Notes under the pieces: generated by a model
Seen by the model: the letters and a program-made list of their open reading frames with translations, nothing else
What the model was told of the DNA's origin: nothing
Databases searched by the model: none
Part shown: in pieces, positions 40,501-62,629 of the stretch
How the letters are laid out: the number at the start of each line of letters is the position of its first letter
Position numbering within the stretch: the first letter of the stretch is position 1
Program-made: the position numbers and the translations under genes
Assembly: GCA_000708835.1 (NCBI GenBank)
Contig: DF237229.1
Coordinates: 1-64,000, forward strand
DNA: 64,000 bases
Origin: Klebsormidium nitens
Taxonomy: Eukaryota; Plantae; Klebsormidiophyceae
Direction of reading: 5' to 3'

Positions 40501-43500
40501 TCTTTATTGAAAGCTTGTAAACATACAAGCTTCTCGCACAATGACAAGCTGTATTCCTTCTCTCATTTAAGCTGAAGCCGAAGTATCTGGCGAGAACCCG
40601 GGTGCAGGACAGGTCAGATGCGAACACAAGCATAGCCCTACACCGCCAGGAATATCAACTCCGCTTGCATCATAGTCTCTCATTCTATATGCTCGTCACA
40701 CAGACTCAAAATCTTTCACTCACATCATCCTCAACGTCCTGGGTATACACGCGAGCGCCCCAACCCAGTCGTGCGGCGCCGTTCTCAGCCGCTGCAGCAG
40801 GCTCCTCTCCGCGTTCATGTAGTGCGGCATCCGCGCCAGCGTGCCCCCCGCGTCTCGTGTCCGGGCAAAGTAGGCCCGCGCGGCCGCGGCGTCGGCCCGC
40901 TCCTCGGCGCGCGGTCGGAGCAGCAGATCGACGGCCGCTTGGAAGGAGCCCTTCAGCAGCGCCGCGCCCACCTCGTGCGTGCGCACACTGCCCGTGCCAA
41001 AGCGCTGCGGGGCAGAAAAGGGAAAATGTCACCGAAGTCACAAGGTATCCTCCTGGCAAAGCTGATGAGATCGTGCTCGAGCCCACAAACGATACCAGAT
41101 GCTACTGATTTCGTCTGGACAAACTTGTGTGTCGGTTCTTTCGTCGCTGGGCGCCTGTTCTTCTGACTGCCTCACAATCTCGTCTCCAAGTGTCTGCGAC
41201 CGACTTCCTTATCCAAAACAAAAAACAGACCATCCTGTGCCAGCGTAACGGGCACAAGACTTAATTTTCTCTGCTTACGGAGCTGTGGATCTGAGTCCGT
41301 GGATTGGATAAGCACCACCCAAGTAGACCTCAAATGAACGCGCAGCGGCTGACCTGTAGGCCGAAGTAGTTGATGAAGCCGTGCTGTTGCAAGGCCTGCG
41401 CTGCAGCCACGGCGTGCTCCTGGCTCTCGAGGGGCACACTCCGCAGCGTGATTGCAAACTGATTCCCGCTCAGCTGACCCAGCGACAGGCCCTCCGGTAC
41501 ATACCTGATGGAAACAAAGGCGCCCACGTTACCATTCAATACTTCCGGAATTTGACCTACACTTTCGAGGAAGCAAATGGGAACCACCACAAAAGTGAAC
41601 ACAGATTGGTCCGGCCGCATGAGGTCGTGATCGAGGGGCTGATAGCAAAAGAGGCCACAAGCAGAGGTTCCAAACAAGATAGGTTCAGGCCCTGATAGAT
41701 AGTGGTCCGGTCAACTTCGCATACTCATAAATTAGACACAGGCTCCCTTAACACCCGTTTCAGCTTGACGAAAAACCAAAGGAACAACGATTGTCGAGTG
41801 TCACGCCAGTTCCATCCAGGGCATCTGAAAGGAAGACTGTTCAGGAGCACACTCAATGAGGACATGATGAAGCTTGAACCAGCTAGCAGTCGAAAAAATA
41901 GTTCAGCATGACGTCAGCTCACGTGAAGTTGCCCAGCTGGATGGAGAAAAGGCGCGGGTTGAGCAATGCCAGCCTCTCCGCGGTGACCCTGTGCAGCGTC
42001 ACGTGCTGCACCGTGACGCCCCGCTTATCCTTCGTCCCCGCATACCCAAACGCTTTCGGCAGCACGCCTAACATCTTCCCAATCAGGCCCATCGCCTCGT
42101 GGCTGTCTTTATTTTCCTTGTACAGCGTAAAGCGCACGTGCTTCGGCCGTTCCTTCGGCCACCCACTCTGCCCTCGGCTGTCCAGCGGAACGTCGTCGGC
42201 CTTTTGCCGTTTGTCCCCGCTTCCCGACCCGTCCTCGTTGCGGCGCTTGCGGCCACGCTTGTCAGCTTCGCCGGCCTTCTTCCACTTCTTGTTGAGGTAG
42301 ACGCGAACGCTCTTCTGAGACACCTCGTTGGGGACCTTGCCGTCGGAGGGGGCGAAGCAGCGCGCGCCCTTGAAGTCGACTGGCATAAGGAGGACAGGAT
42401 TCAGAAGAGAATCCAAGTCAAATGCTGAAAGTGAGCAGTTGTTCGCCCAGATTGGCGAGGCAGCAGGCTGAACGTGAGCCACCTTCCATCGTAAGCCATC
42501 AGGTTTCTCACACTTCATACGACTCTGAAGACGTGCACTCAGATATCCAGCTGTCAGTGAGATCTACATCAGCGAGGGTATAGATCGACTTGTAAAATTT
42601 AGTTTTTTGAGTGGTTCCGAGTGGATAGCTGCACGACCTTGGCATGAACCGCTGACGACCTCTTCAACATTCTCTGTTGCCCAACACGTGCCCCACCCAG
42701 CCCCTCCTCTGACCCCTTCGCAAACTTCCAGCGGGCGGAGCGTCTCTCACCAGTATCTGTGACCAACATGGGCAGCCGCGTTTTGAAGAAGTTGTGCACG
42801 GATGTACGGTGCGCCTTGTCCCCATCCGGCTGCAGCACAAGTGGCTCCACCGCCTGCCCCGCCCCCACCGCCCGCAGCAGCGCCTCAAGTTTCCCCGCGT
42901 CTAGTTCCCCCGCAAGCTCCCGGAATGCTGCCACCGCTGTTGAGACCTCGTCTTCGGGGGCCTTCTCTTCGTCACCGTTAGTCTGGGCGACCGCTGTTGC
43001 ATCTTTCTCAATTTCAGCACTCGCTGATGGAACAGTCTGTGGGGGCTTTGCGCTGTCGGATGGGGCGGGTGCGGACGGTAGGAGTGCGTCAGTCTTTGCT
43101 GAATCTGAGGGCGGGCCTGTGGTTGCTACTGGAGGCACCGGACTTTGGCGCCCAAAGTCAGTGGGCAAGAGCAGGTCCTTCGCATCTGGGGCTGCTACCA
43201 CCTGCAGACGTCAGGCAGACGTCAGGCGTGAAGTGCAATGGCTCAGTTGCTTGAAGCTTTCTAGCTGCTCAGAGCATTAGCGTAGAGAAAAGAGTACGGT
43301 TCTCCAACCTCGGTTCGAGCACCATATTGCAGCTTCTTACCTTCAAAGATCCTAAGGCTTCTTGACGTTTTGAAGCATGATTTCAAACAAAGCCATCGCA
43401 GAGTTGTCTACATCACAAAAGACAGCAGTCTCACAAGAACATTGTGTGAGGATCAAACTGACGTCTTTTGTAGAACTTCACATACCTCTTTTGGAGCCCG

Positions 43501-43911
43501 GAGGTCTGTCAGTCGCACCACATTCCCTTCCAGATCCACCTCATTTACACAAAAATCGGCATATCTGCAGGTGGAAGTGAACACTCAGACTTGAGTTGCC
43601 AGCTCCATAGACGGCAGCCAATGGAGTGGTGGTGCAATAAGGAAATGGAGCCTGCTTCAAGCATGGCCCCCAGAAATGCCCCCCAAGGTGACATCTGGTA
43701 TGAAAGAGGTCAGTCGGAGTCATTGCCATCATCAGAGACCAGTTGACCGCTAAGACACAACCACCACCGGGTATGCCATCCAAAGAGTAAACCGCATAGG
43801 TTTCTGTGCGTACGGTGGTGGTTTGCTTCCGCCTCACCTGTGTTTCAGAACGCCGCTAAAGCCTGGGACATCGTTCACAAAGCACTGAATGCCAAGGACC
43901 TCCTCCGCCAT
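37595..43911 (-). CDS. PUS7: TruD/PUS7-family pseudouridine synthase, multi-exon
   Basis: MAEEVLGIQCFVNDVPGFSGVLKHR|YADFCVNEVD, HRTSVHNFFK, RFTLYKENKDSHEAM, FGYAGTKDKRGVTVQ (catalytic Asp), GNQFAITLR, GFINYFGLQ, M|YVHAYQSFLWN, VLLPLPG, LTGGYRKLL, MTLPSSCYATMAIRELLK. The terminal exon after the donor at ~37685 was not located. Confidence 0.95.
38945..39046 (-). repeat. Degenerate tandem duplicate of the 5' part of a PUS7 exon, with its splice acceptor
   Basis: From 39040 the copy translates HVTQEETEAGACSIADVSLSLPSSSTQCP. The real exon from 38901 translates HVSKEEAEAGAYNIADVLLPLPGGATQYP. Both are preceded by CTGCAG. Confidence 0.85.
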
Positions 43912-44150
43912 CTCTCGTTCAGCCGTCTTGCCGAGACTCAAAAATTCTGAGCACAAACTTCTCCTTAGCAAGGTCTGAATGTGGCCTCGAAACAGGCCAA
44001 GGCGCATTCTATCTTGAACTTTGCTGAAGAGCGCCACCCTTGCACCACCACCTGCTGGCTCCTCGACTTTTTTGTCTAGATAGCACAAACACAACGCAAC
44101 GCTGGTGCCACTGCTAACCTGGTTCTGATCTCTGTCAAGCTTGTATATAA

Positions 44151-44679
44151 GGGTACCGTCATTTTGTAACTGGTACCCCCCCATTAATTCTATCGACCAT
44201 TTTTCAAGGGGGTGTTTTCCTAAGGCCCAGGGGGGCCTCGGCTTCGCCGAGGGGTCCCAAGCCCCCCCCCCCCTTTCACCCGGCGGCATAAGGGGGTCGT
44301 CCGGCCAAAAGTAAACGCAAGTTTTTGCAAGGGCTTTCATAGGGCTTTTTTGGAAAAATCCGCATATTCCGCTAAGTTCTTGCACGCTGTAGAGCCGCGC
44401 AGGGCCGCTTTTCAGCATATTCGGCCCATTTTGGGGCAACCTTCGTACGAATATGATCAAGATATGTGAACAAAGTCTGTTTATAAGGGGCTAAATGGAA
44501 ACTTTAGAGACTGAAGGTCCTGGACTCTTGGGGGTCCTCGGTGGTACCCCCCAGGGACCCTCACTCTCAAAAACTGCGCTGGGTCCCCCCCCCCTCCGAC
44601 CATGGTTCTGCATCTCGGTCCAGGGCCCCCCACCCCCATAGAATTATGGGGGGGTACCACTTACAAAATGACTCTACCC
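44151..44679. mobile_element. PIF/Harbinger (Tourist-like) MITE, 529 bp
   Basis: ~42-bp imperfect TIRs: left GGGTACCGTCATTTTGTAACTGGTACCCCCCATTAATTCTAT, right (rc) GGGTAGAGTCATTTTGTAAGTGGTACCCCCCCATAATTCTAT. Flanked by TAA at 44148-44150 and TAA at 44680-44682. No transposase. Confidence 0.9.
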
Positions 44680-44806
44680 TAAGGTAACCGCAATTCATAA
44701 AACCCGGGTCGCTGGCCTACGCGCTGGCTGCCAAGCTCAGTACCGTTTCACGAACGGTTTACTCTAACCAACTATAACCACATTTATGATTTAAGCCAGG
44801 GACATT

Positions 44807-44815
44807 TTAGGGTTT
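44807..44815 (-). promoter_or_regulatory. Telo-box (TTAGGGTTT)
   Basis: Exact motif in the divergent PUS7/FYVE intergenic region. Telo-boxes are known upstream of plant RNA-processing and translation genes. Confidence 0.4.
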
Positions 44816-45051
44816 GCGCCTACCATTGGCATTGGATGATGATGGACCATGGAAAAGTATTAGCAGTGCAAAGGCAAGCTAGACAGGACAATAATAGACG
44901 CGTCTGATCTGTAGGGCTTAGCCCTCTGCCATTGAAGGGCGCCCATCCACTCCAACAACACATCTGGTGGGAAGATTGTAAGTTGGAGGTCTAGCGACGC
45001 GGTGTTCCTTGAAACGTCCTTGCGCCTAACACCGTGAGCCTGGGGTTGCAG

Positions 45052-48000
45052 ATGGCTGAACCGCCACCTTTCCAGCAAGCTGCAAATTGTGCCATCTGTA
45101 ATTGCACATTTGGCACGTTCAGGCGCAAGGTGAGGGTGCACAGACTAATTGAAGCCTTCAATTCGTCTCAGATATCCTGGGTCAGCCGGTGACTGCGCTT
45201 ACTTTTGAATTTGCTGATGAGCTTTTCCTTGTTAAGGTATAGGGTGTTAGATGAATGAGGTATTTGTTGGGGACATTGCTGGTGGTTGGTCCTTGGTCTC
45301 TTTCATTGCTCAGCTTACATATGCAAGGCGATCGTAGCATGGCTAGCTGAATATGTTCCATTTTTGCTTCCTCTAAACCCGCCCTTTCCTTTCTTCATGT
45401 AGCATCACTGCCGCGAGTGTGGTCGAACAGTCTGCGCGGAGCATGGGAGCAAAAGTAAAGTGAGCCTTCTGACCTTCATAACAATGAGTGTAATCAGGAA
45501 GTATCAGCCCATTCTTGAATTGTTCTTGGAGCTTGATTGGCTGAGTAGATCAGTGTCCACAACAGACTTGCTCTCTGGATAGTGGCACTGCATACAGCGA
45601 TCATAAGCGAAAGACTAACGCGTACCTATTTGTCTTTCTATGTGAATCGGGGCGTTGTTTCATTGCAAATGTCTCTGGTTTTGTACTCGTCTTGCTGTTG
45701 CTCTTCTACAAAACCTTTCAGTGTGAAACGTGGGTAACCCTGGCTGCAGGCTGTACCTCAGTTCAATTTGAACACCCCAGTCCGTGTCTGCGATGAGTGC
45801 TATGACAAGAAAAGGTACGAAAGTTTCTTTGAGTCTGAAGTGTTGGCTTGCATCGTAGTTGCTGGAGCTGCCAGCATGTCAATTGTTGAGAGGCAGTTTG
45901 GGGAAGGGATGTACTTTTTACCAGGTTAAAGGTTGCTGCAAGAAGAATGAAAAGGCTTTCTTGATGAATGTCGTGTTCGCCTACCGCTGACTTGAATCGA
46001 AGTTGCATAAGTACTTCTGAAGTTGCATAAGGAGTCCTGAAATTCCACATGTACTTCTAAGTTGCAGATGTATCATCTCGTCTCCTCTGACCAACAATCC
46101 GTTCTGCCTCTCCAGTGTCAGCCCGTCCTCTGCCAATGGGGCCCAGCCTGTGGGGGATGCCCCCCGGTGGAGCGCCACCAGCAGCCAGGCAGACGGGGAT
46201 GCAGACTCGCTGGCCGCCACCCTGGCGGAGGCGCGACTAGCCTCGTCCATGCCTCCCGCTGCCGCCCCGGTGGTTGACTGCACATGCGGCATGCCCCTCT
46301 GCATCTGCGAAGCACCGCCAAAGGAGGAGGTGACCTCTGCAAACAGTGGCCTTGTCTTCTTGTTTGAAATGATTTTTCTTGCACCTTTTGTGCTCGAGCT
46401 GGCTGTCACTTGAGGACTTGCCGTAGATCCCATGTACTCTTCTAGGTTTGAGAAACTTCATGAAATTGGTAAATCATGGTTGACGCCCTCTGAGCATTTG
46501 ATCTAGATTTGGAAGGAAGACCAGCTCCTCTCAGGAAATGTTGGATGATGATGAGTACGGTCGGAGAGGTCGATGTGCAACGAATTGTTTGTCTTATGAA
46601 ACCCCGTAAGACCATGAATGGGTTCAAGCACGTTTTTGTCAGTTGCTTTTCGAGACCTTGATTCACAATACGGCTGAAGGTTTTAAAACATTTTGATTGT
46701 TCTTGATGGAGGGACAACTGTTCGATATGACCGGAGTAAACTTTGAACGAAATTTGAGCGGCACGACTGAATCACCGTACAAAGTTCAACCATTTCATGG
46801 CCACGCAGTGTTGTCCGTTGCCATCTTCAGACTCGCTTAAAGAAGTTACACTTACAATAGCCCCCGTGTGCCCCTTCAGTTAGATGGCAGAAGACTCTAT
46901 AAGAAGTTCGCTTTATGATCGTTACAATTCGGCAAAAAAACGTCTTTTCAAACCAAAATTTCGGGTCTGGTTTTTAACAGGGTTTCCGTCTTTCCCCAGG
47001 CACCCTCTGGGCCCTCTCCGTCATACCCGAGTCCTCCCGTCCAGCGCTCCCCCAGGGTCGCCAAAGCTGCACCCCAGACGACTAAGCCGGCCCCTGCCTC
47101 CGGGAACGAGATGCCCAGGTAAAGTAACCGACTTGTATTCTTCGTTGTGATGGACCTGAAAGAGCGCGCTCGAGTTCCATACCAGAAAGACCATGTAAGG
47201 CAATAAGACCCAATTTTCAAGACGGGACCCAGTTGGTTGGGCGTTTTGCGTATGTACTTCCGTGTGTCAACCCCGAAGAAACGTCCGCTTCTGATTCAGC
47301 GTCAAAATTTGGTAAACGTCATGCCAGCTCGTATGGAGTTGCAAGCAGGGTCCAAGTTGTGGGACGGATGCGCCTACAGACACAACGTGTACTGCGGTCA
47401 CACTCAGTCCGCTCAGGCCAATTGCCGTTCTTAAGACCTGACAGCTTGCCAACAACCGCATTCTTCCGACCACAGCAGATTGCTTGTTCCTCTAAATTTG
47501 TTTCATACCTTCTTGCCTCGCAGTCTTTTCTTCCAATCGACCAACGGCGGGACACCGGAACCATCATCCAAGCCAGTGTACGAAGAGTCAGGGGAGGTGG
47601 GTAGCCTCTGCTTCACTCAAAGCCCGTCTCATGGCTTTTTCCGGAGCAAAATCCTCGACCGGAAATCTTTTTAAAACACAAATATCCGCCAGCGAAGTTA
47701 TCGAACACTGAACTGCCAGAAACGAGTCGTTCAATGAAGCAATTCTATTCTGAACTCGAGAAGCGCTTGTCGCCCTTGGCAATTTCGGAGCCATATTTGA
47801 GCTATTGAATAATCTATCTATCTATGCCCGTCCAATCTTCGTTCTCATTAGTCGGTCCTCCTCCAAGTGCCATCTAGGGACGGCATGCGTTTGCTCGTTG
47901 GTCAGTGGACTTTAGGGGCATGCAGAGCCGAGTTTGACGTGACTGTCCGTTCTTGAGCAGGGCTTGCGCGAGGCTGTAAAAAGAGGGGACGCGTCTGGAG

Positions 48001-48726
48001 TCAGAAGCCTACTCGCAAAGGTGGGGCCGCCGGATCCGCTGGGCCGAAAGCTGTAGACAGCGATGTTTGAGAATCTGCATCTTGCCATTGCACCAACTCG
48101 TGCACGACTCGAACTTGTTTTCTGCACAAGAGATCTTCTGGCATCAGCCGACTCAGGATCGATTGCTCAGCCGTTGCGTGCTATGCAGGGTGTGGAGCCG
48201 TCGTACGTGGACCGGCAGGGCATGTCGCTCCTCCACCTGGCAGCCATGTTCAACCAGACGGACATTGCATTCATGCTGATTGACGCAGGCGCAAGCGTAT
48301 CTGCCAAGAACGGGCAAGGTGAGTCACCCTCCCCGAACTCCAGACCGATGTTTCTGCGACCGGGGCTTACCCGACATTTGACGCCTGGTCAATGCTGATC
48401 AGAAAGCAGACACAGCCTGAGTGCCCAGTCCTTTCTTAAGTCGGTGGCCTTCTCATTTCCTTCATGCAAGCATGACAGATGAGGTTGCGATTGATTGATT
48501 GAAGACAAAAAAGTTGCACTGATCGGCCGGCACTGTTGCACGCTGGCAGCCATTTTGTGATCGCAAATGTACGAGGCCAGCTTATGGTGCTCGACAGCCA
48601 GAGTAAGCTAGGAAAGTAGACCAGAGCTGACCCGACATGAACTACCTCAATGCAGGCGAGACACCCCTTGATTGCGCACCGGCTACCTTGTCCAACAAGA
48701 TCAAAGAGAAGCTTAGAAGAAGCTGA
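45052..48726 (+). CDS. FYVE zinc-finger plus ankyrin-repeat protein (plant-type)
   Basis: MAEPPPFQQAANCAICNCTFGTFRRK|HHCRECGRTVCAEHGSKSK|AVPQFNLNTPVRVCDECY (FYVE). Central CTCGMPLCICEAP. Then YEESGE|GLREAVKRGD, ankyrin YVDRQGMSLLHLAAMFNQTDIAFMLIDAGA...KNGQ|GETPLDCAP, and the stop at 48724-48726. Confidence 0.9.
46000..46070. repeat. Degenerate 20-bp minisatellite in an intron
   Basis: AAGTTGCATAAGTACTTCTG-like unit repeated about 3-4 times. Confidence 0.7.
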
Positions 48727-49916
48727 TTGGATCGACTGATTTCGCGAGTTGGATGAATTGTACTGTATCTTTGGAAGGTGTACATTAAGAGCCGATATAG
48801 CCTTTAGTCATGGAACTGGTTGTACGTACTGTATGGTTAAGATGGCCTTTCCTAGACTTGAAATTGGTCGATGATCCCGCTCTTTTTCCTTGAATGGTCG
48901 AAAGCTGTTGCACAAGACACGTTGGGAACGTGTCTATACCATCTGGCACGTCTACCTGGTAGTTTGCAAGTAAACGAGGCTTGAGCATGGTAAAGTCGCA
49001 CGATTTTTGGCGAAAGGCGAGGAATTATGTCACCTGTACCTCTAACTTGTCAACATGCTGCAATGTTTGCACCGCGCATCTGACTTGCCGATAGGAACTT
49101 ATGCTACTATTAGTGATCGACATGGAAAAGGTGGCAGCTTCAAAGCGTACGCCTAGTCAGCGCCCGCTTTGTAGTAGTAGCCTAGCCTGCTCCATCCATA
49201 TAATTAGTTTTATATTGAATGCATGCAGTGCGCCCCTATAGTCGCAGTGTGCGGCTCACTGAATAGTACGGTAAGCTATCATAGAACGGTAGCTACATGG
49301 TAAGTACGAAACAACTAGTGTTCTGGTCGGATCGTTGCATGCCTATGCTGATCGCTGCATGTGGCAGGCACCAGGCTTGAAAGCTGGAGTCGCGAGCCAT
49401 TGCAAGTTGCAATTTGCAGCATTGCCTGGCATCGCTCAAAGAATTCGGAGGGATCACGCATCTGCCGTCGCCGCCGGCCGGTAGTTCATGCAAACGGCCA
49501 TCATGCATTGTCGACGATTGGGGACCTAGAAGCAGCCTCCGTGCGCCATATGTTCCTGTTGCCGGGGCCGCTGTAGGTTGAGTGGGCCTACATGTTTCTG
49601 GTCGGTCAGCTAGCCCGGGTATATGATACATCCGACCGGGCAAGTAGCTGACGCCGACGGTTCATGCAAAAGCTTTGCTGATTGCCGGCATGAGAAACGG
49701 CATTGACCTTGCATGTGCAAGTCTGTGCAGCCAAACTTCGGCAACCTTTCCTCATTTCTGAATTTTCTCCCCCACTGGCACGGCCACGGCACACGACTCA
49801 CAATCGGTGCTGCAGCTCCTGCCCCCCTCCTGCGCTGCCACAATTACCGTGGCTAATTGTGGCAGACTAAGTTAGAGGAAGGACGGGCCCATCCCCTCCA
49901 CCAGCCGACCGTTCTA

Positions 49917-51513
49917 ATGGAGCCCGCTCAGAGGAAGAGGCGCGTGCTCTTTGTCTGCAGCCATAATTCAAACCGCTCCATTGCTGCAGAAGCCATTGCC
50001 AGGAAGCTGCGTCCGGACCTGGATGTACATAGTGCGGGAACGCTTTCTGCGGGGTCGCTCAATCCGGTCATGGTCAGCGCGTTGGAAGGCAGGGGGTTCT
50101 CCACGGAAGGCATGTTCTCCAAGGTCAGTACTTTAAGCTTCTGATGACATTTGGCCAGTGTCAAAGTGGAAGTCGTCAACCATCTGCAGCGCCCCAGCAA
50201 ACCAGCGCGGCAGCCCTTTCGATTGCAGCTCTGCAATGCACTGTGGTATTGCACGTCACAATGCCTCTAGTGGACTGGGGCACTTTTGGTTTAAGTAAGG
50301 CAAACCATGATTCAAACGAGGCTTCTGACTGCCTGTGCTGCATCCCAACCTTTTGTAGTGGCAGACTTGATGCGAATCCCATATGTGTTTGAGAAGCATC
50401 ACCGCATGAATGAGTCAGCCCAAACTGCTGTCCTTCTTGGAAAGGAAGCAACATGAAGTGGGGGGCTTGGTCGGTAGATTATATGCTAAAGACCCCTGTC
50501 GGCTTGCAGAACCAGTCATCCGGATACGCTCTGATTGGGAACAGAGTATTAATACGCTGGGACAGTAACCAGCTCGGCACATGTAAGAGCAGAATTCAGT
50601 CTCCGATTGGCTTTCAATCCCTCTGTGGAGTACGTTGCTTGACAACATATGTCCGTGTCTGAGAAGGCTGACATCGGCAAGAGCAAGTGCTGATGCGCGG
50701 CTGGTTTATGCACGCTGTGCAGGGCATTGATGACGACACTGTCAAGGGACTGAACAACCATTGGGATGTAATCTGCACCATGGGCTGCCTGGTAAGTGCA
50801 TCACTGTGTAAGTAGGCTTGAGTTTGGAGACAGGTGAGTCCCAGAGTATCAGCTGCTTGCATCAAAGCTGACATCTGCTTTTGAGGACTCTGAACATGGT
50901 TCCTGGTCTTGAGCCGTTCGGTCAATGGCAAGGAAGACATTGTAATCTCAAGATCAGGAGCAATGTTGCGAAAAGTTGGAAGTCGATGGCATGCTTGACA
51001 CAAACCGCTGTATCAGCCCTTTATTCAGAACACACGATGTTTCGGAATCATGGGGATGTTCTACTTGAAGAGTCAGAAGGGTTGGACAAGGACAGATCGA
51101 ACGAGTCGTGCTTACTTGCACGTGTGCCGGTGTCAACATCCTATTATCTTTCCCAAGCACAGTGCCCACCAACTTGTGCAGCGGCCCGTTTCCGCTGCGC
51201 ACTTTCTTCTTCTGTTAATCACGCCTCTACTACAATGTGTGGCAACGCGGTTTGTTGGCCAGCATGAAAGCAGTATCATTTATTAAAGCATTACCCACTC
51301 TTGTTTTGATGAAGTACACCCTTAGTATGCCACCTCCTTTTCAACCAGTAGGGATCTGCGGTCTTTTGCTTGCCGCAGGCGAAGGGCCTACCTTACGACC
51401 CTCCTTCATCAACGGAGGTCTACGACTGGGGCCTGCCAGACCCGGCAGCGCAGCCGGAGCTCCTTGACATGGTTGTGGAGAAAGTGATTGAACACGTGAA
51501 AAGTATAAAATGA
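49917..51513 (+). CDS. Bacterial-type ArsC / low-molecular-weight phosphotyrosine phosphatase-fold protein, 3 exons, ~136 aa
   Basis: Exons 49917-50123, 50723-50791 and 51379-51513, all phase 0. Product has RVLFVCSHNSNRSIAAEA (P-loop CX5RS), VHSAG, WDVICTMGC and YDWGLPDPA. Confidence 0.85.
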
Positions 51514-52418
51514 GCCCAACACATTTTTGTGGTCACACTGCATCTGTAAGTCCCTGAGTTGTACGGTCAAAGGTTTCGTACCCAACGTTGTTTTGGTCCT
51601 TTGCTGCGAACTTGTAACAGGTTCGAAACCGCGCTGTTTCGGTCAAATGCATGTAGGCCAGGTGCAGTACAATGTTGAGCTCGATGTCAATCTTAGCTAA
51701 AGTGAACTTTGCAGGGGGCCCATGCAGTGCTCAAAGAAAAGGTTACAAGGTTAGTAGACTTCACACTGAGGGCCTCACGACATGATGATAGATGCTTGTC
51801 AGGCCGTGCTCAGAGCAAACATCGGTCTCAGTCTTGCTAACAAACACCGCCCAGGTCAAACGATGGTCTCGCTTTGAAAACATGGCCACGCGCTCGTCAT
51901 CTTAACAAGAAGGCATTAATCAGCCGGCCGCGGGCGGTCACGCACGTGATGATAACTTAGTATCAAATTGTGATATAGAATTTGTGTTCGCACACATGCT
52001 GCAGCGTTTTATAGGTAAATTGTCGGAACGTACAACCATGCTATGATCCGTTTCGATCCGCCAATACTGAAAGTTAAGTATATATACGTACTGATACTAA
52101 CAAACACAAGTAGACGGTACATCATGGTATATATATGCAGCCTGAGGCCAGTGCATTTCATGCATCATCCCGCGCAGGCATGTCGGATCAGTGCCTTCCG
52201 TGCATGCAGTTCGTAATATAAACAGTTGAAAGCAGAAACCTTATCAAAAAGTCTGGCACATGCATAGATCCACATCGTATGTCACCAATCCTTCCCTACA
52301 CCCTTCAAATGACTCACAGACGCAGCTATCCGAGTCTGCCTCTCGCTTCTATGCCGCTACCTATTGTCTTGGAAAGATTGACAAGAGTAGGATTGATCAG
52401 GCAGGTACGAAGCTATAA

Positions 52419-53889
52419 CTAGTTGTAGAAGTTGTTGCCCAACTCGTCCACTAAAGTCTTGAGAGCTGAGCTAGCTGGTATTTCAAAGTCAATTGTGTCC
52501 AAGAGTTGCGCAGATGAGACGTAATGTGGAGGTTCTTGGAACGTGATTACAACATCTGGATAACACTTTTGCAAATCAATGGCTCTCTTTGCAAGTCCAT
52601 CTATTGGACCCGCAATGTGCCTCAGATCTACATCCAGAGCCCTCAGATTAGGACAGCAACTCAGGACCTTGGTCATTAACCTGAAATCCTCCGAATTTCT
52701 CACGCTAAATTGGATGGACTTCAGGAGGGCAAAACGGATGCTCTCCAAAGCCTGGCTGCAATTGATGGACTCGTACAACTGACCAATTCCGGTCCCCATT
52801 TGATATTCTACTACCGTATGAGGCAAGATTTGTAGAAAAGTTGCCAGCGGACATCGCTCGCTTGCTATTGCCCAGTATTCAACGTTGATGTCGAGGTTGA
52901 CCTTGTCAAAACTCTCAAACGTCTGTAAAAGCGTCTCCACATTACTCACATGCCAATTCCCACCTTCAAACCGCAACTCGGTGAGGCTAAACTTGCGGTT
53001 CCCAAGTTCTAAGGACTCTATTGCCCCGGTAAAAGTCACACTTGTCTATTTCGGTGCTTTCAAGATGAGTCTGCTTAGCCGAGGGACTCCTTTGAAGGAC
53101 TGCAGGTTGGGTGCATTTATCACCAGATTGCCCCGGATGATTGCACGGAAGAAGTCTAGCTTTTCTAGTGTACAAGACTTTAACTTTGGCTCCTGCAAAC
53201 CAGGGCAGTACTTGAGGCTAAGTACCTTCAGTGCAGGCGCCTGAGTCAGCAAGGAGTGCAGGAACTGGTCGGAGATAGTTGCACCTTCCAGTCGCACTTC
53301 CAAAAGGTTGTTGAATGCCAGCAGTCCTCCCCAAGGGAACTTGGAAAGCAAACCCCGAATGCTTCAACAGCACGGTCTCGAGAGGGAGGGCTGCCAGAAG
53401 CCTCCAAAGCTGAGAGGATGCTTCCTCGGTCCGCGGACATTGACCACTGAGCAGGGCAAAGACCCTTAGGTTGGTGCACTGCCTCAGGATGGCAGTCAGC
53501 AACTCAATCGATGCACAGACCTGCACCTTCAGTGGATCGCCTTCGAACGTCCGGGTGTAATGCAAGGCCAAGCTGCGGAGATGAGGACCCATCTGAGTGA
53601 CCGCTTGCACACCCACCATGCTCCCCAGCGTATCGGAAAAGTCCCAGAAGACATGTCTAGCAGCTGCCAGAGCGTTCAATGCTCTAAATCTTTTACAGAC
53701 CACCGACAGTTGGCCCAAGCTCCGGGCGAAGACCCAGTGGCCCTCCCCAGCCACAGCTGGGATGGCTGGGAGCGGCCACACTTCCAAATGCGCGTCTTGC
53801 TTTTCCGCTGCTCTCTCCAGTATCTTCTGCAGAAGCTCGTCATCGAGCTGGTCAAAAGTGCAGCCGCCTCTGTGCTGTCCGCTGGCCAT
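52419..53889 (-). pseudogene. Intronless F-box/LRR gene with a frameshift and an in-frame stop
   Basis: F-box-like TFDQLDDELLQKIL...LSVVCKRFR, followed by LRR-like segments. The frame changes near 53330 (GTTCCC-T-TGGGGA). An in-frame TAG sits at 53046-53048 (KAPK*TSVTFTG). No intron signals bridge either lesion. Confidence 0.75.
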
Positions 53890-54877
53890 GTTCACGAACA
53901 AGGAGAGGTCCAGGGCGCAAAAAGGTCAAAGAACGAAGTTGTAAAAGTGTTCACATGCTACTTTTACGCAAGGTGCGTCAGCATCTTTGACAATCGGGGC
54001 ACTCTGCTCTCCTCGGTGACGATTTACAATATCTTGGTTAAGGGCTAGGTAACCGCAAGACAACCGGGTGGTTTTTGAGGGTCAGCTTGATCACGGTTAA
54101 AGCTTCCGGTCGAGCTGACACGATATACATTAAGCTTCGGTTTTGATCTTGTTCAGACCCCGGTTTGGTATTTGACTACCTAGAGAAGCAGTGACTTTTC
54201 GGTCATGGAAGGAAGGCAGGCTGCTACTGTAGTTAGTCTCTGCCCGGTGGTTTGGAGGAGTATTATAGGGTCGCCCGGTGCTTTTTTCAGGTTCCTTGGA
54301 TGACGCGCTACCGCACGCGCGACGACGAGATCTTTGGCAATCTGGCGGCCGACAGTGCCGGCCTTGGTAACACTCAGCTGGTAACACTTTTACAACTTCG
54401 TTCTATGTACTACTTGCGTCGAGGGCCGCCTCCACTACACCGTACACGGTACACCAACACTGCCAGGTGACCTCTCAATCTGTGCCTTGATAGTGTCCGA
54501 GACTGCGACTGCACCCAGGACCAGAGTCCAGGAAGCTACCGTAGCCTAAGATGGATTGTCGCTGTTTGGTCACCGGGTAAGTTGCTCGTCAGCTACCGTC
54601 ACGGCGAGTTCCCCCGTCATGCTCGCCAGCAGGTCCCAGAAACCGGCGTGCCTCTTGACGTCTTTCGGGGCGACCCTCCTGCCTTCAAAAGTAAATTGCC
54701 CTTCTTTCCCGACGGCGAAAGATTGGCTCCGACTCCCGGGTCCAGCAGGCGCTGCCAGTGCCAGGCGCAGCCTTGAAGATCACTGCTTCAGCGCTCTTTG
54801 ATTCTTGGAAGGTGGTCACTCGCCAACTTCGCAATCTGCAGAGAGTCTCGGGGTGTTCTGGCGAACAGAAGAGCGCC

Positions 54878-57800
54878 ATGGCAGGCACCCACACTCTCTT
54901 GCGGTTACCTGGACCCACTCTTACTACTTTGCAGTGCAAGGGCAGCCAGCTCCGGTCTCGCTTCGGGCAGGCTATTGCCTGTCCTCTGGTGGCGCGGCCC
55001 GCTGCGGGCAGCTGTCTTGAGCAAAGATGCACGGCGCACAAAGGTGAAAGGTTTGCGACACAGGTGGTTGCGGACAATGACGCCATTTATTGACACGGTG
55101 CCAATCAATCGTGCTTAGGCCCAGCAGTAATGAGACAATGCAGAAGTCTATGACAGGAGCTTTCAAGCACAAACACATCCCGCTGCCGTCTTTAGGCCAT
55201 AGTCCCGCAACCAAATGCTGCCATCTTACACTTTCTCAGACTTACTTCAATGTTTGTGCTGTGCCCTTCCTGCCGTCTCCTTCCTCTTACCTTTCTGGCT
55301 GGCTGTCTTTCCAGCCTGCTCAGCTGACACTAACTTCTTTCTGCATTGGGGCAGCCTTTCTCCCTGCTGGAACGGGACTATCAGCATCCCCGTTTCACCA
55401 GCGGCTTCTGCACCAGTCTGAGAGGAGAGGCGCTCTGAGGCACCGGCCGCAGGCGGTGGCCGACGTGCTGACGGAGGCCCCCCTGCCGGAGCAAGAAGTT
55501 AGAGAAAAGGTGCGGCTTCTTCAGCGGGCACTTGTCGTTTTCACTAGGGGTATTTTGACATGCAATGTAAACAAAAGGAACAAAGTGCTAGTCATGTCGC
55601 TGTAGCTTTGCTTAGCCGTCTTGGAGTGGTACGCTGGTGGAAGGCACGTGAAAACCATTCACAAGGTTGGTAAACGAGCGGCTCGGATTTCTTCTCAACA
55701 ACTGCTCAGTTTTGGGGGCAGAATCACCTTGTTCGGAGTTTCTTGATTGCCCTTTCCCAAGTAGCAGAAAAAAGGGCAGTGACAATTTTCAAAAAGAAGA
55801 CTTTATATTACACAATCCGCCGCAAAATATGAAAACGAGTTATCCTGAAACCCGCCGTCGTTAAAGCAGTCGGGAAATCAGCAAGATCTGTGTAGGAAAG
55901 ATTGAAGGTTTGAAAACCAGAGGTTTAACGTAACCTAAAACCCTGGAGTCGATATATCACACCATGGGCATGTATGTCTTGTACACTTGTGAGATTGTTT
56001 TCTTTGGAAATCATTCCTTTCCAAGTCGTAAAAGGTGTTTGTCAATCACGAGAGAAAAAAATTCCCAAGAGACTAATATAAATAGCAGCGACTTGTTCTT
56101 TCTTAAAATACAGTCCATACTTTTTGATAAAATGTGAAGGGACTGAAAGGGCCCCTGAGTCCTGCAGGCCATTGATGAGGTTGCGGCCCGCCTGGCTGCG
56201 GAGCATGGGTCTCTTCCAACGGGCCCGAATGGGCGGGATGACCGCGACCTGATTCTGTGGTTCCTCCGGGACCGCAAGTTTGACGTTGACAAGGCGGTTG
56301 AGAAGCTGGCCACCGCAATCGTATCCTTACAGCCTCTTCCGGGCAACTGTGGCACATCGACCGTTTTCTTCAGGGGTTTAATTTAAGAAATTCTTTCAGC
56401 CTTGCAAATGCCTCAAGGATATTCTAAGTAGCTGAGCTGAGCCAGGTTGCAGTAGGTCAAGGAAATGCAGGGCTCTACAAAACGATTGCTTGAATACTAC
56501 AGCGGGGGGTTTCTGTCTGGCGGACGCCGTAAAGGTCTCTTTTTGGACATTGCCCCGTTGCGCGTTTCCTTGACTCCCTGCTCAGCAATGGCGCACCGAC
56601 TTTGGCGTGGAGGCGCTCACGGACGAGAGGGTGGCTGCGTGCGCTGCCACGGGGAAGGCCTACTTGCACACGGCCAAGGACAAGGAGGGGCGCTCCGTCG
56701 TTGTGGTTGTCGCAGGACAGCACCGCCCCGAGGTGAGCACTTTCCCATTGCCCCACGAATCTTGATACAAGTTTTGTGGGCTGACACATTGGCCTGGTTG
56801 GTCAAGAAACACGATGGGAAGCCAGGTCGTAGAGCTACTCTTCCGGTCGAATCGTACTTACGAGGAGAGGTCGTGGATTCAGGTCCTTTGGATGGTCATA
56901 CAAGCGCTTTTTTTTTGTCAATCTGTTTGGCAACTTCGATGAGCTCCTTAGGGAGCGCAGTCGGTACAGGTAGTCCACAAGAAACGCTGGGTTGTAAGCT
57001 TCAACGGAAGTCTTAGAACGGGGCCAAAGTCGAACGTGGAGACTGCCAACGACAAGTTCGCCGTCTCAACGATGGCCAGTTCACCGAGCAGCAACCACCC
57101 ATCATTTGCAGTCGACAATCCATTCTCTTTTTCCTTTTCTTTCCCCCGTTTTTCCGCAACATGTAGTCCCTTGACTACAGATATCATTCTAAGGAGACCC
57201 CGCAACCAGATCCTCGGGCTTGTTAAACACACGAACATGATTCAGATCGTTACATAACGAGATGAGATGCTGAACTCGATCCTGCAAGACTTCCTTTCTT
57301 GTGATATTCGAATCCAGACCATCAGTCGACCCTTCGCATGCTCTCGCAACATTCATTCCTACGTTTCTGGGGGGGCCGGTCCAAGGTGGCACGGATCAGC
57401 GCCTTCATCCATAACCTGGAGCCAAGACAGAGCGAGAAGCGAAGACACCCCCATCGATTCAGTTGATCACCCTTAGAAGCGTGTCTCGCAGACCTCGGGT
57501 GTAACAACTTCTTCAAAGTGGCGGAGTTCTCTGGAGAGACTCGCGCCCGTTGCTGTCGTGCGTACATGTCCTTTGAAGGACGTCTCAGCTGATTATCAGC
57601 AAGACGTTGTGTCACAGACTTCGTGCTGTGTGAAACCATCATCAGAGTTACGGAGTTCTCCGGAATTCTGCGCGCCCGTCTCTCGCTTGCAGGAGTCTTC
57701 CGTTGGAGGACACCTCGGCTGATCGTCAGCAGAATCAATTGTTAGAGACTTCGCGGTGTCTTACACCACCTTCCAAGTCATGTGTTGGAGTTTTCCGGAG

Positions 57801-59351
57801 AAATCACGAGCTCCTCTTTGTTGTACAGGAGTTTTCGCTGGAGGACAGTCAGCGGCTGTGCGTGCACATCGTGGAGCAGGCGGTCGCCAACCTGGAGCCG
57901 CCGACGGAGCAGATTTTGGGCATCTTCGACCTGCGCGGCTTCCAGCAGAAGAACACCGACTGGCCCTTCATCAAGTTCCTCGTCGACATCTTCTTCAAGT
58001 GAGGCCGCTTTGCCACTTTTTCTTGTCCGCTCTGAGAATATGACGAAAGTGGTTGATGGAAATACCAACGTAGTACGGAGCTTTAGGTTGTAGAGGGGTC
58101 ATTTGTTATACTCTTTCGTCGTCAACTTGAGGAGAAAAGTCTGCGACTTTATTACGTGCCACTTCTCCTTGATGATTCAAGCCTGAGGTTTCGCAATGTA
58201 CCTCAATACCCTCTGTCCCTCCTGGTAATCTCGTTTGCCAGCGCTTCCGGACAACCCGCGGTTGACCTTCGCCTAGGTTAGTTTTTCAACAAGCAGTCTC
58301 ACGAAAGTTGTAAACGTCCGGACGTAAAGGCGGCGCTCGGTCGCCCAAGTAACGGCACCGCGATCTCCGTTCCCCTAATCCTTTTTGCCGTTTCTCTTGA
58401 TTCCTCTGAACACTTTGGGCACTTGATTCCCCTTTGTTTACCGTCAGACGCCGCATGCACGTTTCTGTATAAGCATTGGGGCTCAACGTAAATCTGCCGA
58501 CAAAAGCGCCTGATCATGCGCCCTGTTCTTCCAGGTACTACCCGAAGCGCCTCGGTCACGTGCTGTTCGTGGACGCGCCCTTCATCTTCCGGCCAGGCTG
58601 GGAGATCGTCAAGCCCTGGATCGGCAAATACAAGGAGCTGGTAAGCGCGCCGGCTCAGCCTGCCGCTGGAGCAGACTGCCTCTGACAAGTTGCGGATAAG
58701 GGAAGGCTGCTAGATCGAAAAGTACTCAGCAATGTCACAAGTGGAAGTGGATCCCGTATCGTCGCTTCTGTTCCGTGCCTTTGGAGTCATTTGATTTAGG
58801 CGAGCTCAACTTGTGTCGTCGACAAGCTCAACGGTGGTCCCCCTCTGGGGGCGACACCCAGTTTGATCGACCACAATTGACGTTTTTCACTCACCTTCAA
58901 GATCCTGTCTCCCTTTGTCTGGGGGCATTTTCACAAATTGGAAACGAAGTTAAAAAACAGTTCCTTTTTCTGTCCCACAACAGGGCATCATATATCCACT
59001 TTTCTATCTTTTTGATCCATCGCTGACGGTGGACTAACTCGAACGTGTCCAAGGACGTAAGCGGTGCTGTCTGCAGGCTCCGGGAACAGCCGAACCCCTC
59101 TCACTTTCTTAAGTTCCATTTGGTCCAGTCGAACGTCCGCAGCTTGTCCTCGAGGATCCTCCAACCAATTGGTTAAAAGAGACATGCTGCTTCTGAAAGC
59201 AACTGCATAGTGCAAACTTCAGACGCCCGCAAGGCAGGCCAAAGCGGGCGACTGAGCACCGTTTTGCATACCGCAGGTCCGGTTCTGCTCCGCCAAGGAC
59301 GTCAAGGAGTATTTCACGGACGAGACGCTGCCTCCCAACTTTCGGACCTGA
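54878..59351 (+). CDS. CPSFL1: Chloroplast Sec14/CRAL-TRIO lipid-transfer protein, CPSFL1-like
   Basis: Transit-like exon 1, then [33 protein letters not shown]...[35 protein letters not shown] and terminal [24 protein letters not shown]. These match the Arabidopsis CPSFL1 motifs as I recall them. About 7 exons. Confidence 0.9.
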
Positions 59352-60927
59352 CTTCTGTGAGCGCTGAAGCCGAAAGGGGGCCTGTGTTTGGTGCCCCCCT
59401 TTGGCGGGGCGGCTCCCATTTCAGTTTGGGATTGTACGCGCAGGTTGTTGAGTGTGCCCAACTCCGAGATTTTGAGCGTGTTGAGTTGTAACTTAGAAAC
59501 AAGGTAGCGGTACTAATCGTCCCCTAGGGATGTTGAGATTGGACCTATTGTTGCAGATTAGCTAGACATCCCCACGGCCATAGGTGTTGCTTGAATCGAG
59601 GCGGTAGGTCTGGTGGACTTCACCGACGGATGACCCCCTGATTTGTTGATGCTTTTACAGCTGTAGCTAGTGGACCATTTGAGCACTTCTGCGTGCTTGA
59701 GCGAGTAAATGATCACGGGCCGGTAGTTGTGAGAACAGGCCGCCCAGGCTTCCACTGCAGCCCGCGGCATATGTTGCCAAAAGAAGTGTAGTAGTGTCCG
59801 TTTACAACTCTATGTGATGCCCACCCCAGGCGGGGAGACCTGTTTGCAAGCTAGCCCGGCCCGCCCTTGATCGAGTTACTGATTGATTGCGCTCACCAAT
59901 GTCAAACTTAAAACACATATCTCATGCGCGAGTTCAAATTAATTGCAAGCGCGCCTTGACGAGCGGGGCCGGCCAGACATTTTTACCATATTAAGGTTTA
60001 TGTATATGCGCATATGAGCAGCCTAGGTGCAGGACTCCGTCCGCACGTGGCGCGCGGCTTTTACCATGTGATGATTGGTAAATTGAGTGTTCAATGAACA
60101 GTGGGCCGAAGTGCTCCGACACATATTTAACATACATTCTGATCGAGAGCTACTGAGCGACACACGTTCTCAAGCATATAGCGCGCAATTCCTAGTAAAC
60201 TGCGCCAAGCGCAAGCTTCGCATCAAAATCATCAATTAATATGAGCCACTGAGGGCTGCATAATCAAAAGAGCGGAATGCGTACATATGAAGACGTTTCC
60301 ATGGACCACGCTCAGTGTCCTCAGATCTTACATGTGGCAGGCCCTGCATGCGCATTCAGTTGGCATACGTTTCATGACCGAACATCAAACGTTGGTGGTT
60401 GCAGTATCAATTAGAATCACAATTGTGCGCCACGCGTGCACAGCCTAGACTCACTAATATCAAGTGAACCTTGGAACAACATGAAAATGATCTAGCTGTC
60501 AAGCGTTGCGTAACCGCACGGCCCCAATGCTCTGTGTTTGTGCAACATATCTATGCACCCAAGCTCTTTCGATCGGATGATCTTGCACGTCCATTGGCAT
60601 GACGGTCACAAGTTAGGCTGGAATGCAGCGTACCGTGACTGACTAAGCCGTACGTTCAATTGATCCTATAAAATGAGACGGCTTTACTTGCTTGCACGTA
60701 GTATGGAATGAGCCGCTGATCGACAGCTTTTGCAATATCGATCCAGAAACTTTTCCGCTCTTATTTCAGAAAGAATGCAGCTACAAGCTATTCCTTTGGC
60801 GGGTGCACTGATCATGCCTCCAACGGTGGCAATCGTGCATCTCGGTTTGACGTTCCTAAACCATCGAGCCTGACTATATTGGCTGGAAAAAGCCTTGCTC
60901 CTGTCTTCCTTCGACCGTTGCAGCCCC

Positions 60928-62629
60928 TCACCCGTGGTTCCCGTACCTCCCGGCCGCCTCACCCCGCTCATTGGTGCGTACCGGCGGGCCCGTGGCTTTC
61001 TTGAGGTACTCGATGACGTCAGCCCGGTCCTTGGGTTCGGGGAGGCCCTCGAAGTCCATCTTGGTGCCCTGCACGTACTTCTGCGGGTTCTCCAGCCAGA
61101 CGTACAACGTCTCCTCGTTCCAGATTGTGCCCTGCGGAGAACGAGACGAGAGTCGCTTCAGGGCCCTTTGAAGGCCAATCGATAATTTGGAAACACATCT
61201 GTAAACGAACACTCAACAAAATCCTGATCGACGTGGGGCGGTTGAGGAAAATCAGACGCAATTTTCGTCGACTTTGGCGACCAGCTCTTGCCTCCGTTAA
61301 AGAGCGAATAGCCTAACGACACGCGTTTAGATTCAATCCATGTACCGACCATGATGTCAACTAGAGCCGTCATTTTTCTTTTCTTCAACGGACCGCTGGT
61401 GCTGGCCTGCCAATGCAGGGCATACCGTACACAGGCAGCCTTTTTTCAAGAGCACCGAAATGCACGTTGTTTGCAATAGGAAAGAAAATTTGAATTGTAG
61501 CAATTTAATAAGTCCCAATGCTTTTGACTCATAAGCCTCGCCAAGAATGACGGCACCCTGACAACTCTACGAGTGTTCCCACCGGGGGCCGGAATCGGTT
61601 GTTTTTCTGGCCGAATTGCCGGTTCCAGAACCTTGCCGCACCAAAAGCATCTCGACTTCTTCACGAAGAAAAACCACATCTGCTTAGAGATTCTTATAGG
61701 AACCACTTCACACACTCGGACCATTATGCGTCTCATTCGAGAGGTGGACACCCACCTTCAGCTGGAGTGCTTGTGAGTAACCCCGAGGGAAGTCGGGAAG
61801 CCTCCCTGACCTACACAAACCGAGGCAGGCTGAGAGTGAGCAACCTTCAAGTATTTGAAACGGCGCTTTGTGAAAGTTCGAGAAGGAACTCCTTTGCAAC
61901 GCTATCTATTCAAATGCACACTACGGACGGTGCAATCTGCGACAAGTTCCGAAAACGCTGCACTGTCATGAAAGCTACTAAATGACGTACAGGATCAGAT
62001 ACCCTGAGCTCTTAACCTGCCAATCAAGTGGGGTGCTCATTTTCGAGCAGAATTTTTTGGAAGGGGTTCCAAAGACAGGTAGCCTTTCCTTAACCCGGTG
62101 CATGCAGCAACACAGTTGTTCAGACCTCATCCCTGTCTTGAGCCCAGACTCATCAGAGCGAGCATCCTCTAGCTGTATTTGGAATCAAGAGTATTTAGAA
62201 TACTAAGAAAGCCTAAGTAGAGCAGATTCTGTGCAAGTTACAGCGCAGCAGCTCTACAACCCCCATCTTCACCTCCCGCCACCTCTCCCATTTGATTACC
62301 AACCCTCCTCCCCAGCACACCCCTCTCAGCACCTTCCCACTGGCAACATTTAAGTGCTTTGACTTCTGAACGCCAGTTGCCCAAATGTGCACCCAGCCTT
62401 TCGCTGCATGACCTGGAAACCCCCTGGTCTTATCTGCGCGCATGCCCTCTCACCTTCTCCCAAACAGTCCCCACAGGTTTGGCGCTTTGGGTCCATGGGA
62501 GTCTGGCCCCGTTGCATTCGGGTTAATGGCGTGGCACTTGGCACACGTCTGCTTGTAGATCTCCTCCCCTCGTTGTGGATCCCCTTGGGGAGCTTTGGAA
62601 AAATCCTTGTCCGCGCCCGCCCGTGACAT
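60928..62629 (-). CDS. Divergent class I cytochrome c, 3 exons, with a C-terminal extension
   Basis: Exons 62629-62454, 61810-61756 and 61131-60928 are phase-consistent. Product is [144 protein letters not shown]. CxxCH and the GTKM axial Met are intact. Confidence 0.9.

Follow-up and report, generated by a model that had tools for sequence, protein, structure and literature searches.

The stretch of DNA analysed here, referred to below as the window, comprises the first 64 kb (64,000 nucleotides) of the Klebsormidium nitens scaffold DF237229.1 (assembly GCA_000708835.1; scaffold length 113.7 kb). At positions 49917-51513 of its plus strand lies a three-exon gene whose predicted product resembles bacterial arsenate reductases of the ArsC type. 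Both introns begin with GT and end with AG, and the exons jointly encode a protein of 136 amino acids in which the motifs CSHNSNRS, HSAG, DVICTMGC, LAKGLP and DWGLPDP are all found, as an initial annotation made from the DNA letters had described. A GenBank coding sequence on the scaffold covers exactly the same span. Its product, GAQ86282.1 (P0122), is identical to the exon translations, with residues 1-69, 70-92 and 93-136 matching exons 1, 2 and 3 piecewise, and it carries the name 'Putative phosphotyrosine protein phosphatase I superfamily/ARSENATE REDUCTASE'.

Exon 1 (49917-50123) encodes residues 1-69, which include the first beta-strand, the P-loop and the HSAG motif, and it ends in GMFSK directly before a GT donor. 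The P-loop codons C14-S-H-N-S-N-R20-S21 occupy positions 49956-49979, and as read from the sequence Cys14 would be the nucleophile and Arg20 the binder of the oxyanion. Intron 1 (50124-50722; 599 nucleotides, GTCAGT...GTGCAG) is in phase 0 after Lys69. Exon 2 (50723-50791) contributes the 23 residues 70-92, GIDDDTVKGLNNHWDVICTMGCL, and holds the codons for Cys87 (50774-50776) and for Cys91 (50786-50788), the latter being the first resolving Cys and equivalent to Cys82 of the pI258 enzyme. Intron 2 (50792-51378; 587 nucleotides, GTAAGT...CCGCAG) is in phase 0 after Leu92. Exon 3 (51379-51513) encodes the remaining 44 residues (93-136) and the stop codon, and includes the codon for Leu96 (51388-51390), at the position where relatives carry a second resolving Cys, and the codon for Asp113 (51439-51441) of the DWGLPDP motif, the predicted general acid. 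Because the product has no N-terminal extension, it is taken to be cytosolic.

The basis for splicing is the GenBank model together with a transcript from the congener K. subtile, and the whole-protein analyses used the K. subtile product (P0001) and GAQ86282.1. The K. subtile Trinity transcript, whose product is 91% identical, crosses both splice junctions without a break, and thus no hidden exon restores the Cys-Pro motif that is missing after TMGC. Such an exon, which the initial annotation had named as a possible complication, was also looked for with tblastn, using relatives from Tetraselmis and Prasinoderma that bear the motif, and no match to the window fell inside either intron. The hidden exon is therefore ruled out.

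Several lines of evidence place the protein in the low-molecular-weight protein tyrosine phosphatase (LMW-PTP) fold and, within it, with ArsC. Exon 1 alone matches the Pfam family PF01451 (LMWPc) with 36.8 bits against a gathering cut-off of 23.2, and P0001 scores 42.3 bits. When whole-length relatives were searched against NCBIfam, the matches were exclusively ArsC models, with the glutaredoxin-type TIGR02689 at the top. A phmmer search of the PDB matched ArsC structures at E-values of 1e-10 to 1e-6, led by Cg_ArsC1' of C. glutamicum (3t38; E 1.2e-10) and followed by the enzymes of Synechocystis, B. subtilis and S. aureus, whereas eukaryotic LMW-PTPs were matched only at E-values above 0.01. 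Eukaryotic and Wzb-type phosphatase structures overall gave values of 0.003-0.9 versus the 1e-10 of ArsC, so the protein is not closer to these phosphatases. The residues that follow the DP motif are AAQPE, and the aromatic residues that bind phosphotyrosine (DPYY) are absent.

An AlphaFold2 model of GAQ86282.1 (pLDDT, a predicted confidence score, 93.9) has strands at residues 8-14, 35-41, 85-88 and 105-108, which correspond to the four-stranded parallel sheet of the LMW-PTP fold. With this model, Foldseek returned 3t38 as the best match, then 1lk0 (TM score 0.81, root-mean-square deviation 2.1 Å) and then other ArsC structures. There were 94 PDB matches at E-values of 0.001 or below, and the best 50 are all ArsC or LMW-PTP/Wzb-type phosphatases. 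Since ArsC ranks best by both sequence search and predicted fold, the window product is an ArsC-type member of the fold that belongs with bacterial ArsC rather than with the vertically inherited eukaryotic LMW-PTPs. The affinity to bacterial thioredoxin-type ArsC suggested by the initial annotation is in this way borne out.

A profile search for relatives returned a top tier above 140 bits that is sharply set off from the next tier (96 bits or less), which is mostly made up of actinobacterial ArsC proteins. The top tier includes three proteins from K. subtile and two from K. nitens, proteins from Closterium, Mesotaenium endlicherianum, Chara braunii, Tetraselmis and Prasinoderma coloniale, metagenomic sequences, and three bacterial sequences (P0020, P0024 and P0025). 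In a maximum-likelihood tree this tier forms one clade with 100/100 support that spans six algal genera and stands apart from other ArsC proteins. Within it, Klebsormidium, Closterium and Mesotaenium form a subclade, also supported 100/100, that we refer to as the derived subclade. K. subtile 'a' is the orthologue of the window gene (support 100/97) and the other K. nitens paralogue, GAQ82424.1, groups with K. subtile 'b', which indicates that the duplication predates the two species. A metagenomic relative (P0010/P0126, from JGI and Logan contigs of about 1.2 kb) also groups with the K. nitens paralogue 'b'; it carries the motifs CSHNSNRS and ICTMGCLQKGLP and a 60-residue, Asn-rich N-terminal extension.

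The introns are spliceosomal, as first proposed, and they are old. The position of intron 1 (after ...SK) is common to Klebsormidium, Chara, Closterium, the K. nitens paralogue and a Klebsormidium-like alga known from metagenomes (locus L001). In Chara the intron follows ...RSK, and in Closterium the gene models P0026 and P0027 are interrupted immediately ahead of GIADEE. The position of intron 2 is found in Closterium as well, between MGCL and PNLP, and not in Chara. GAQ82424.1 has both intron positions of the window gene, with shorter introns of 378 and 271 nucleotides. The 145 codons of the Chara braunii orthologue (BFEA01000963.1, L008:10001-21358) are scattered across 11.4 kb, and its introns measure about 4.7 and 6.2 kb.

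Members of the clade come from Prasinodermophyta, Chlorophyta and streptophyte algae, and from a rare bacterial lineage represented by metagenome-assembled genomes (MAGs), and this breadth argues for an old acquisition. If the gene was inherited vertically, a copy of bacterial ancestry would have been present in the green lineage before Prasinodermophyta, Chlorophyta and Streptophyta diverged. The three bacterial MAG sequences lie near the base of the clade, where the careful tree gives a polytomy between a sister and a nested placement. A search of 185,579 prokaryotic species genomes found the algal type of ArsC in one only, the MAG NIOZ-UU106, and the next-best matches are Streptomyces sequences that are about 40-45% identical. 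Among named bacteria the nearest are Actinomycetota, next to one unclassified MAG lineage. No cyanobacteria are named among the 120 best profile matches or the 80 genome loci, and the tree was built without an explicit cyanobacterial outgroup. Of the old horizontal or endosymbiotic acquisition proposed in the initial annotation, the age is therefore upheld by the breadth of the clade, and a cyanobacterial or endosymbiotic source finds no support. The top tier of the profile search, which was not an exhaustive search of land plants, contains no embryophyte protein, and this absence fits a loss in land plants and replacement by HAC1/ACR2.

The bacterial members of the clade are encoded in a conserved operon of an SDF-family transporter, the LMWPc gene and a metallophosphoesterase, with no ars genes nearby (L003:4814-7373, L009:3092-5817 and L010:1920-4644, on MAG contigs that include NIOZ-UU106). 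All three genes overlap at their start and stop codons in L003 and L010, and in L009 only the LMWPc gene and the next gene do so.

Column statistics were compiled for 24 clade members and 94 other ArsC proteins. All 24 clade members have the residues C14, H16, N17, R20, S21, C91 and D113. The common state of the clade is the canonical three-Cys set with TMGCMDGQCP, as found in Tetraselmis, Prasinoderma and the bacterial trio, and position 96 is Cys in 15 of the 24 clade members and 77 of the 94 other proteins. In the derived subclade this residue is Leu in eight of nine members; Closterium, which has a different loop, has Pro in the column. Because TMGC-LAKG-L-P of the window product aligns column for column with TMGC-MDGQ-C-P, Leu96 is a genuine substitution of Leu for the second resolving Cys (Cys89 of pI258), and the absence of the resolving Cys from the CP motif that had been described is real. 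Of the features that characterise thioredoxin-coupled ArsC, the protein retains the C-X5-R-S/T P-loop, the first resolving Cys and the Asp of the DP motif, and it lacks the second resolving Cys.

The same subclade has a remodelled P-loop, in which CSHNSNRS replaces the CGHNAGRS of the remaining clade (G15S, A18S and G19N). S15 and N19 are present in all nine members and S18 in eight, with Closterium keeping Ala18. Elsewhere in the clade, the Chara orthologue retains Cys at the second resolving position, but the Pro that should come next is Gly (TMGCMQMQCG), and its loop has an eight-residue insertion. On the chlorophyte/Prasinoderma-type side only, SCGT replaces SAGT in the column of the window's Ala40. 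This extra Cys adjoins the conserved Ser-x-Gly and is found in ten of the 24 clade members (P0008, P0012-P0014, P0016-P0019, P0021 and P0023) and in none of the 94 other ArsC proteins sampled, and four of its carriers have a further Cys in the loop, MGCMDSGACEKLGPC.

Among characterised enzymes, Cg_ArsC1', a thioredoxin-coupled protein of the HN type, is the best match in both sequence and fold, at about 28% identity. Both it and the algal protein have a CxHNxxRS P-loop, an SAG motif, the sequence D-V-I/V-x-TMGC that includes the first resolving Cys, and DW-L-DP, which contains the catalytic Asp. However, Cg_ArsC1' has a second resolving Cys (TMGCGDVCP) and an N-terminal dimerisation domain, and the algal protein has neither. 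The algal sequence instead reads TMGCLAKGLP with Leu96, its loop is one residue longer (Pro at +6 rather than +5), and its P-loop contains N19. The ArsC enzymes of S. aureus pI258 and B. subtilis, which use a Cys10-Cys82-Cys89 cascade, have the same fold (TM scores 0.81-0.82, root-mean-square deviations 2.0-2.1 Å). Equivalents of pI258 Cys10, Arg16, Cys82 and Asp105 are all present in the alga, although the pI258 P-loop is of the GN type (CTGNSCRS) and the algal one of the HN type. Wild-type pI258 ArsC needs Cys89 to transfer the disulfide to thioredoxin, whereas the algal protein has no equivalent and is naturally in the C89L state. The second-ranked structure, 1lk0, is the pI258 C89L mutant, a trapped Cys10-Cys82 disulfide intermediate.

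The Synechocystis PCC 6803 enzyme (2l17/2l19), a glutaredoxin-coupled hybrid and the second-best PDB sequence match, has the same fold and, like the algal protein, two close Cys residues in the loop after the third beta-strand. In that enzyme the pair is Cys80-Gly-Cys82 and the P-loop reads CKRNSCRS, whereas the algal Cys87 and Cys91 are spaced differently; Cys87 aligns with an Ile of the Synechocystis protein, and the alignment places Cys80 of 2l17 within an insertion. The algal protein thus has neither the Cys8/Cys80-x-Cys82 triad of the hybrid class nor a score that reaches the TIGR02689 cut-off. ACR2 (Cdc25-like) and HAC1/ATQ1 (rhodanese-like) presumably catalyse the same reaction and have a CX5R-type oxyanion loop, but are unrelated to the algal protein in fold and in ancestry. 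An ACR2-like gene, kfl00445_0080, is present in K. nitens as well, and thus the ArsC-type enzyme is additional to it rather than a replacement.

The genomic setting of the relatives provides a functional context. In Closterium sp. (CANIUD010000238.1, L005:3222-9426), a homologue of the arsenite exporter gene ACR3 lies head-to-head with the ArsC gene, and the Klebsormidium-like alga of JGI metagenomes 3300060284 and 3300060285 (L001:2903-7281 and L002) carries a divergent ACR3-ArsC pair too; accordingly, the arrangement is conserved across two classes of streptophyte algae. The exporter of these pairs is an ACR3-type member of the Pfam family SBF with the motifs RCIAMV and SNNFELAIAV. Next to the K. 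nitens paralogue GAQ82424.1 (L007:554-11613, on DF237060.1) come ArsH (FMN_red, on the minus strand) and a MIP channel, which together form the cluster already described in print. Three independent loci, in Closterium, the metagenomic alga and the K. nitens paralogue, thus pair relatives that lack Cys at position 96 with ACR3 or ArsH.

The window gene itself has ordinary eukaryotic neighbours only. Those annotated in the flanks examined (39917-49900 and 51600-61513) code for a TruD pseudouridine synthase (minus strand), a FYVE/ankyrin-repeat protein (plus strand), a CRAL-TRIO protein (plus strand) and a cytochrome c-like protein (minus strand). No tblastn match to ACR3 was found anywhere in the 64-kb window, the annotated neighbours include no other ars gene, and synteny of the window with the L001 alga does not extend past the ArsC gene itself. 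The gene is nevertheless under strong purifying selection, with ratios of nonsynonymous to synonymous divergence of 0.06-0.11 in comparisons with the paralogue and with the L001 alga. Between the paralogues, synonymous sites have reached saturation (divergence greater than 1).

Taking the gene model, fold, ancestry, residue states, linkage of the relatives and purifying selection as direct results, we infer an activity and a recycling route for the protein. We consider it probable that the window gene, the unclustered one of two K. nitens paralogues, encodes an HN-type ArsC of bacterial ancestry that has retained arsenate reduction and is recycled by an external thiol. Cys14 in the CX5R P-loop would attack arsenate, which Arg20 would hold while Asp113 serves as the general acid. 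Cys91 would then attack Cys14, releasing arsenite and leaving a Cys14-Cys91 disulfide. With Leu96 at the site of the canonical third Cys, the textbook hand-over from Cys82 to Cys89 and on to thioredoxin would be impossible. As the protein lacks the Cys that faces thioredoxin, an external thiol system would most plausibly resolve the Cys14-Cys91 disulfide or a Cys14 that has become glutathionylated, with glutathione (GSH) and glutaredoxin as the likeliest candidates. Both are abundant in the eukaryotic cytosol. We propose more tentatively that the Klebsormidium and Zygnematophyceae subclade as a whole may be a natural two-Cys arsenate reductase that exchanged the thioredoxin cascade for GSH/glutaredoxin after entering the eukaryotic cytosol, an extension that is possible but that we would not yet bet on. 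The observations of the initial annotation are thereby confirmed and its interpretation is partly supported, and the 'distinct chemistry' that it ascribed to the algal protein is something that can only be inferred.

Several observations weigh against retained arsenate reduction. P0001 misses every NCBIfam ArsC equivalog cut-off by a wide margin (about 43 bits versus 157-215), with 43.2 bits for TIGR02689, the model of the glutaredoxin-coupled hybrid (cut-off 157.6), 42.9 bits for NF010053 (cut-off 215) and 38.6 bits for TIGR02691 (cut-off 174.3). The window copy is linked to neither ACR3/ArsB nor ArsH. Messens et al. in 2002 reportedly found that pI258 ArsC carrying the C89L mutation becomes trapped once it has completed a single turnover with thioredoxin, and multi-turnover activity of the algal protein would therefore need another recycling route. 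The remodelled P-loop, whose N19 occurs in none of the 94 other ArsC proteins, gives a weak Ssu72-like Pfam match, and P-loop remodelling together with the Cys loss could mark a change of substrate. This leads to an alternative in which the unclustered copy, or the whole CSHNSNRS subclade, is a neofunctionalised phosphatase that uses only Cys14, Arg20 and Asp113, does not reduce arsenate, and acts on a phosphoprotein or a small molecule. Such a role would agree with a P-loop that is unlike the clade's CGHNAGRS and resembles the CxxNxNRS of Ssu72 (Pfam Ssu72 E-values 0.0085 to 2.8e-4), with the lost second resolving Cys and the missing ars neighbours, and with the placement of the nearest bacterial members in an operon with an SDF transporter and a metallophosphoesterase rather than in an ars operon. 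However, a pure phosphatase would not need Cys91, which every clade member retains, and relatives that have the derived P-loop and no Cys at position 96 are still paired with ACR3 or ArsH at three separate loci. The sequence past the DP motif (LPDPAAQPE) also offers no aromatic residues for phosphotyrosine binding, and the best family and structure matches are all ArsC. We therefore regard a phosphatase as unlikely, while giving it more weight than any other alternative.

The loss of the third Cys might instead have been compensated internally. In a rewired three-Cys relay, Cys87 would replace the lost residue, so that a Cys14-Cys91 disulfide passes to Cys87-Cys91 within the CTMGC motif and then to thioredoxin or glutaredoxin. 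Cys87 is only four residues from Cys91, the top NCBIfam match is to a glutaredoxin-type model, and Cys87 is kept in all seven aligned Klebsormidium-type proteins (from three paralogue lineages) and in the L001 gene even though synonymous sites are saturated. But the score of 43 for TIGR02689 is far under its cut-off of 157, and the residue is confined to these Klebsormidium-type sequences. Closterium (Val; IVMMGC) and Mesotaenium (Phe; FVFTMGC) have also lost the third Cys and have no Cys87, yet they retain the gene, which in Closterium lies beside ACR3. Position 87 is Val or Ile in 93 of the 94 other ArsC proteins and falls inside the predicted beta-strand 85-88, where it is probably buried and conserved for packing. 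Given this strand position, the hydrophobic residues of other ArsC proteins and the absence of Cys87 from Closterium and Mesotaenium, Cys87 is most likely a buried core substitution and not part of a relay, which makes the internal route improbable. The likeness to the cyanobacterial hybrid pair that the initial annotation saw in the extra Cys is unlikely on the same grounds, given also that Synechocystis Cys80 does not align opposite Cys87. We find it very hard to credit that the gene reflects bacterial contamination, a very recent transfer or a vertically inherited eukaryotic LMW-PTP. Its membership in the general LMWPc family of Pfam, which is common to eukaryotic LMW-PTPs, is what such an origin would share with the data. 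Contamination or recent transfer is contradicted by the two spliceosomal introns at positions common to other streptophyte algae, by the location among ordinary eukaryotic genes on a 113.7-kb scaffold, by orthologues and paralogues in K. subtile transcriptomes and by the synonymous divergence of the paralogues. A eukaryotic LMW-PTP is contradicted by the much stronger matches to ArsC structures, and the fully supported branch that sets a clade of six algal genera off from other ArsC proteins speaks against all of these origins.

That a soil alga carries a bacterial-type ArsC gene with introns is already known, both from the GenBank annotation and from a 2020 publication (Foflonker and Blaby-Haas; PMC7826186). 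It describes nuclear gene neighbourhoods of ArsC-, ArsH- and ArsB(ACR3)-like genes in Chromochloris, Coccomyxa and K. nitens, reports that K. nitens has every ARS gene as two paralogues but just a single cluster of two genes, and finds algal ArsC homologues nearer to assorted bacterial ones than to one another. Its supplementary table lists only the clustered K. nitens ArsC, kfl00111_0010, which is the paralogue of the window gene, and does not list the unclustered copy of the window; the accessions GAQ86282 and GAQ82424 were not found in the available supplements. Nor did the accessible parts of the paper yield a discussion of the Cys set, the P-loop change, ACR3-ArsC pairs in Zygnematophyceae or the breadth of a clade that includes Prasinoderma, Tetraselmis and Chara. 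In the literature searched, we found no mention of the loss of the second resolving Cys and the change of the P-loop in the Klebsormidium and Zygnematophyceae subclade, of the ACR3-ArsC pairs that Closterium and the metagenomic alga carry, of how widely the clade extends or of its rare bacterial kin.

The practical significance of these findings is modest, as the gene is annotated and the general point published. A 2022 review (PMC9454679) still maintains that homologues of prokaryotic arsenate reductases are missing from eukaryotes. The algal ArsC family contradicts this for green algae, among them the streptophyte algae to which land plants are most closely related, as the 2020 paper had noticed before. 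What the present analysis adds is that one of the algal clades goes far back and was passed down through the green lineage, and that a streptophyte subclade lost the Cys that defines the thioredoxin-coupled mechanism and yet stayed linked to ACR3 or ArsH. If the more tentative reading of a natural two-Cys arsenate reductase that switched to GSH/glutaredoxin is true, the subclade would represent a third independent route to GSH coupling among ArsC enzymes of the LMW-PTP fold, after the Synechocystis type and the mycothiol type, and a prokaryote-type arsenate reductase would operate in the closest algal relatives of land plants, contrary to the 2022 review. The subclade offers a natural experiment in the re-plumbing of a bacterial redox enzyme to a eukaryotic thiol system.

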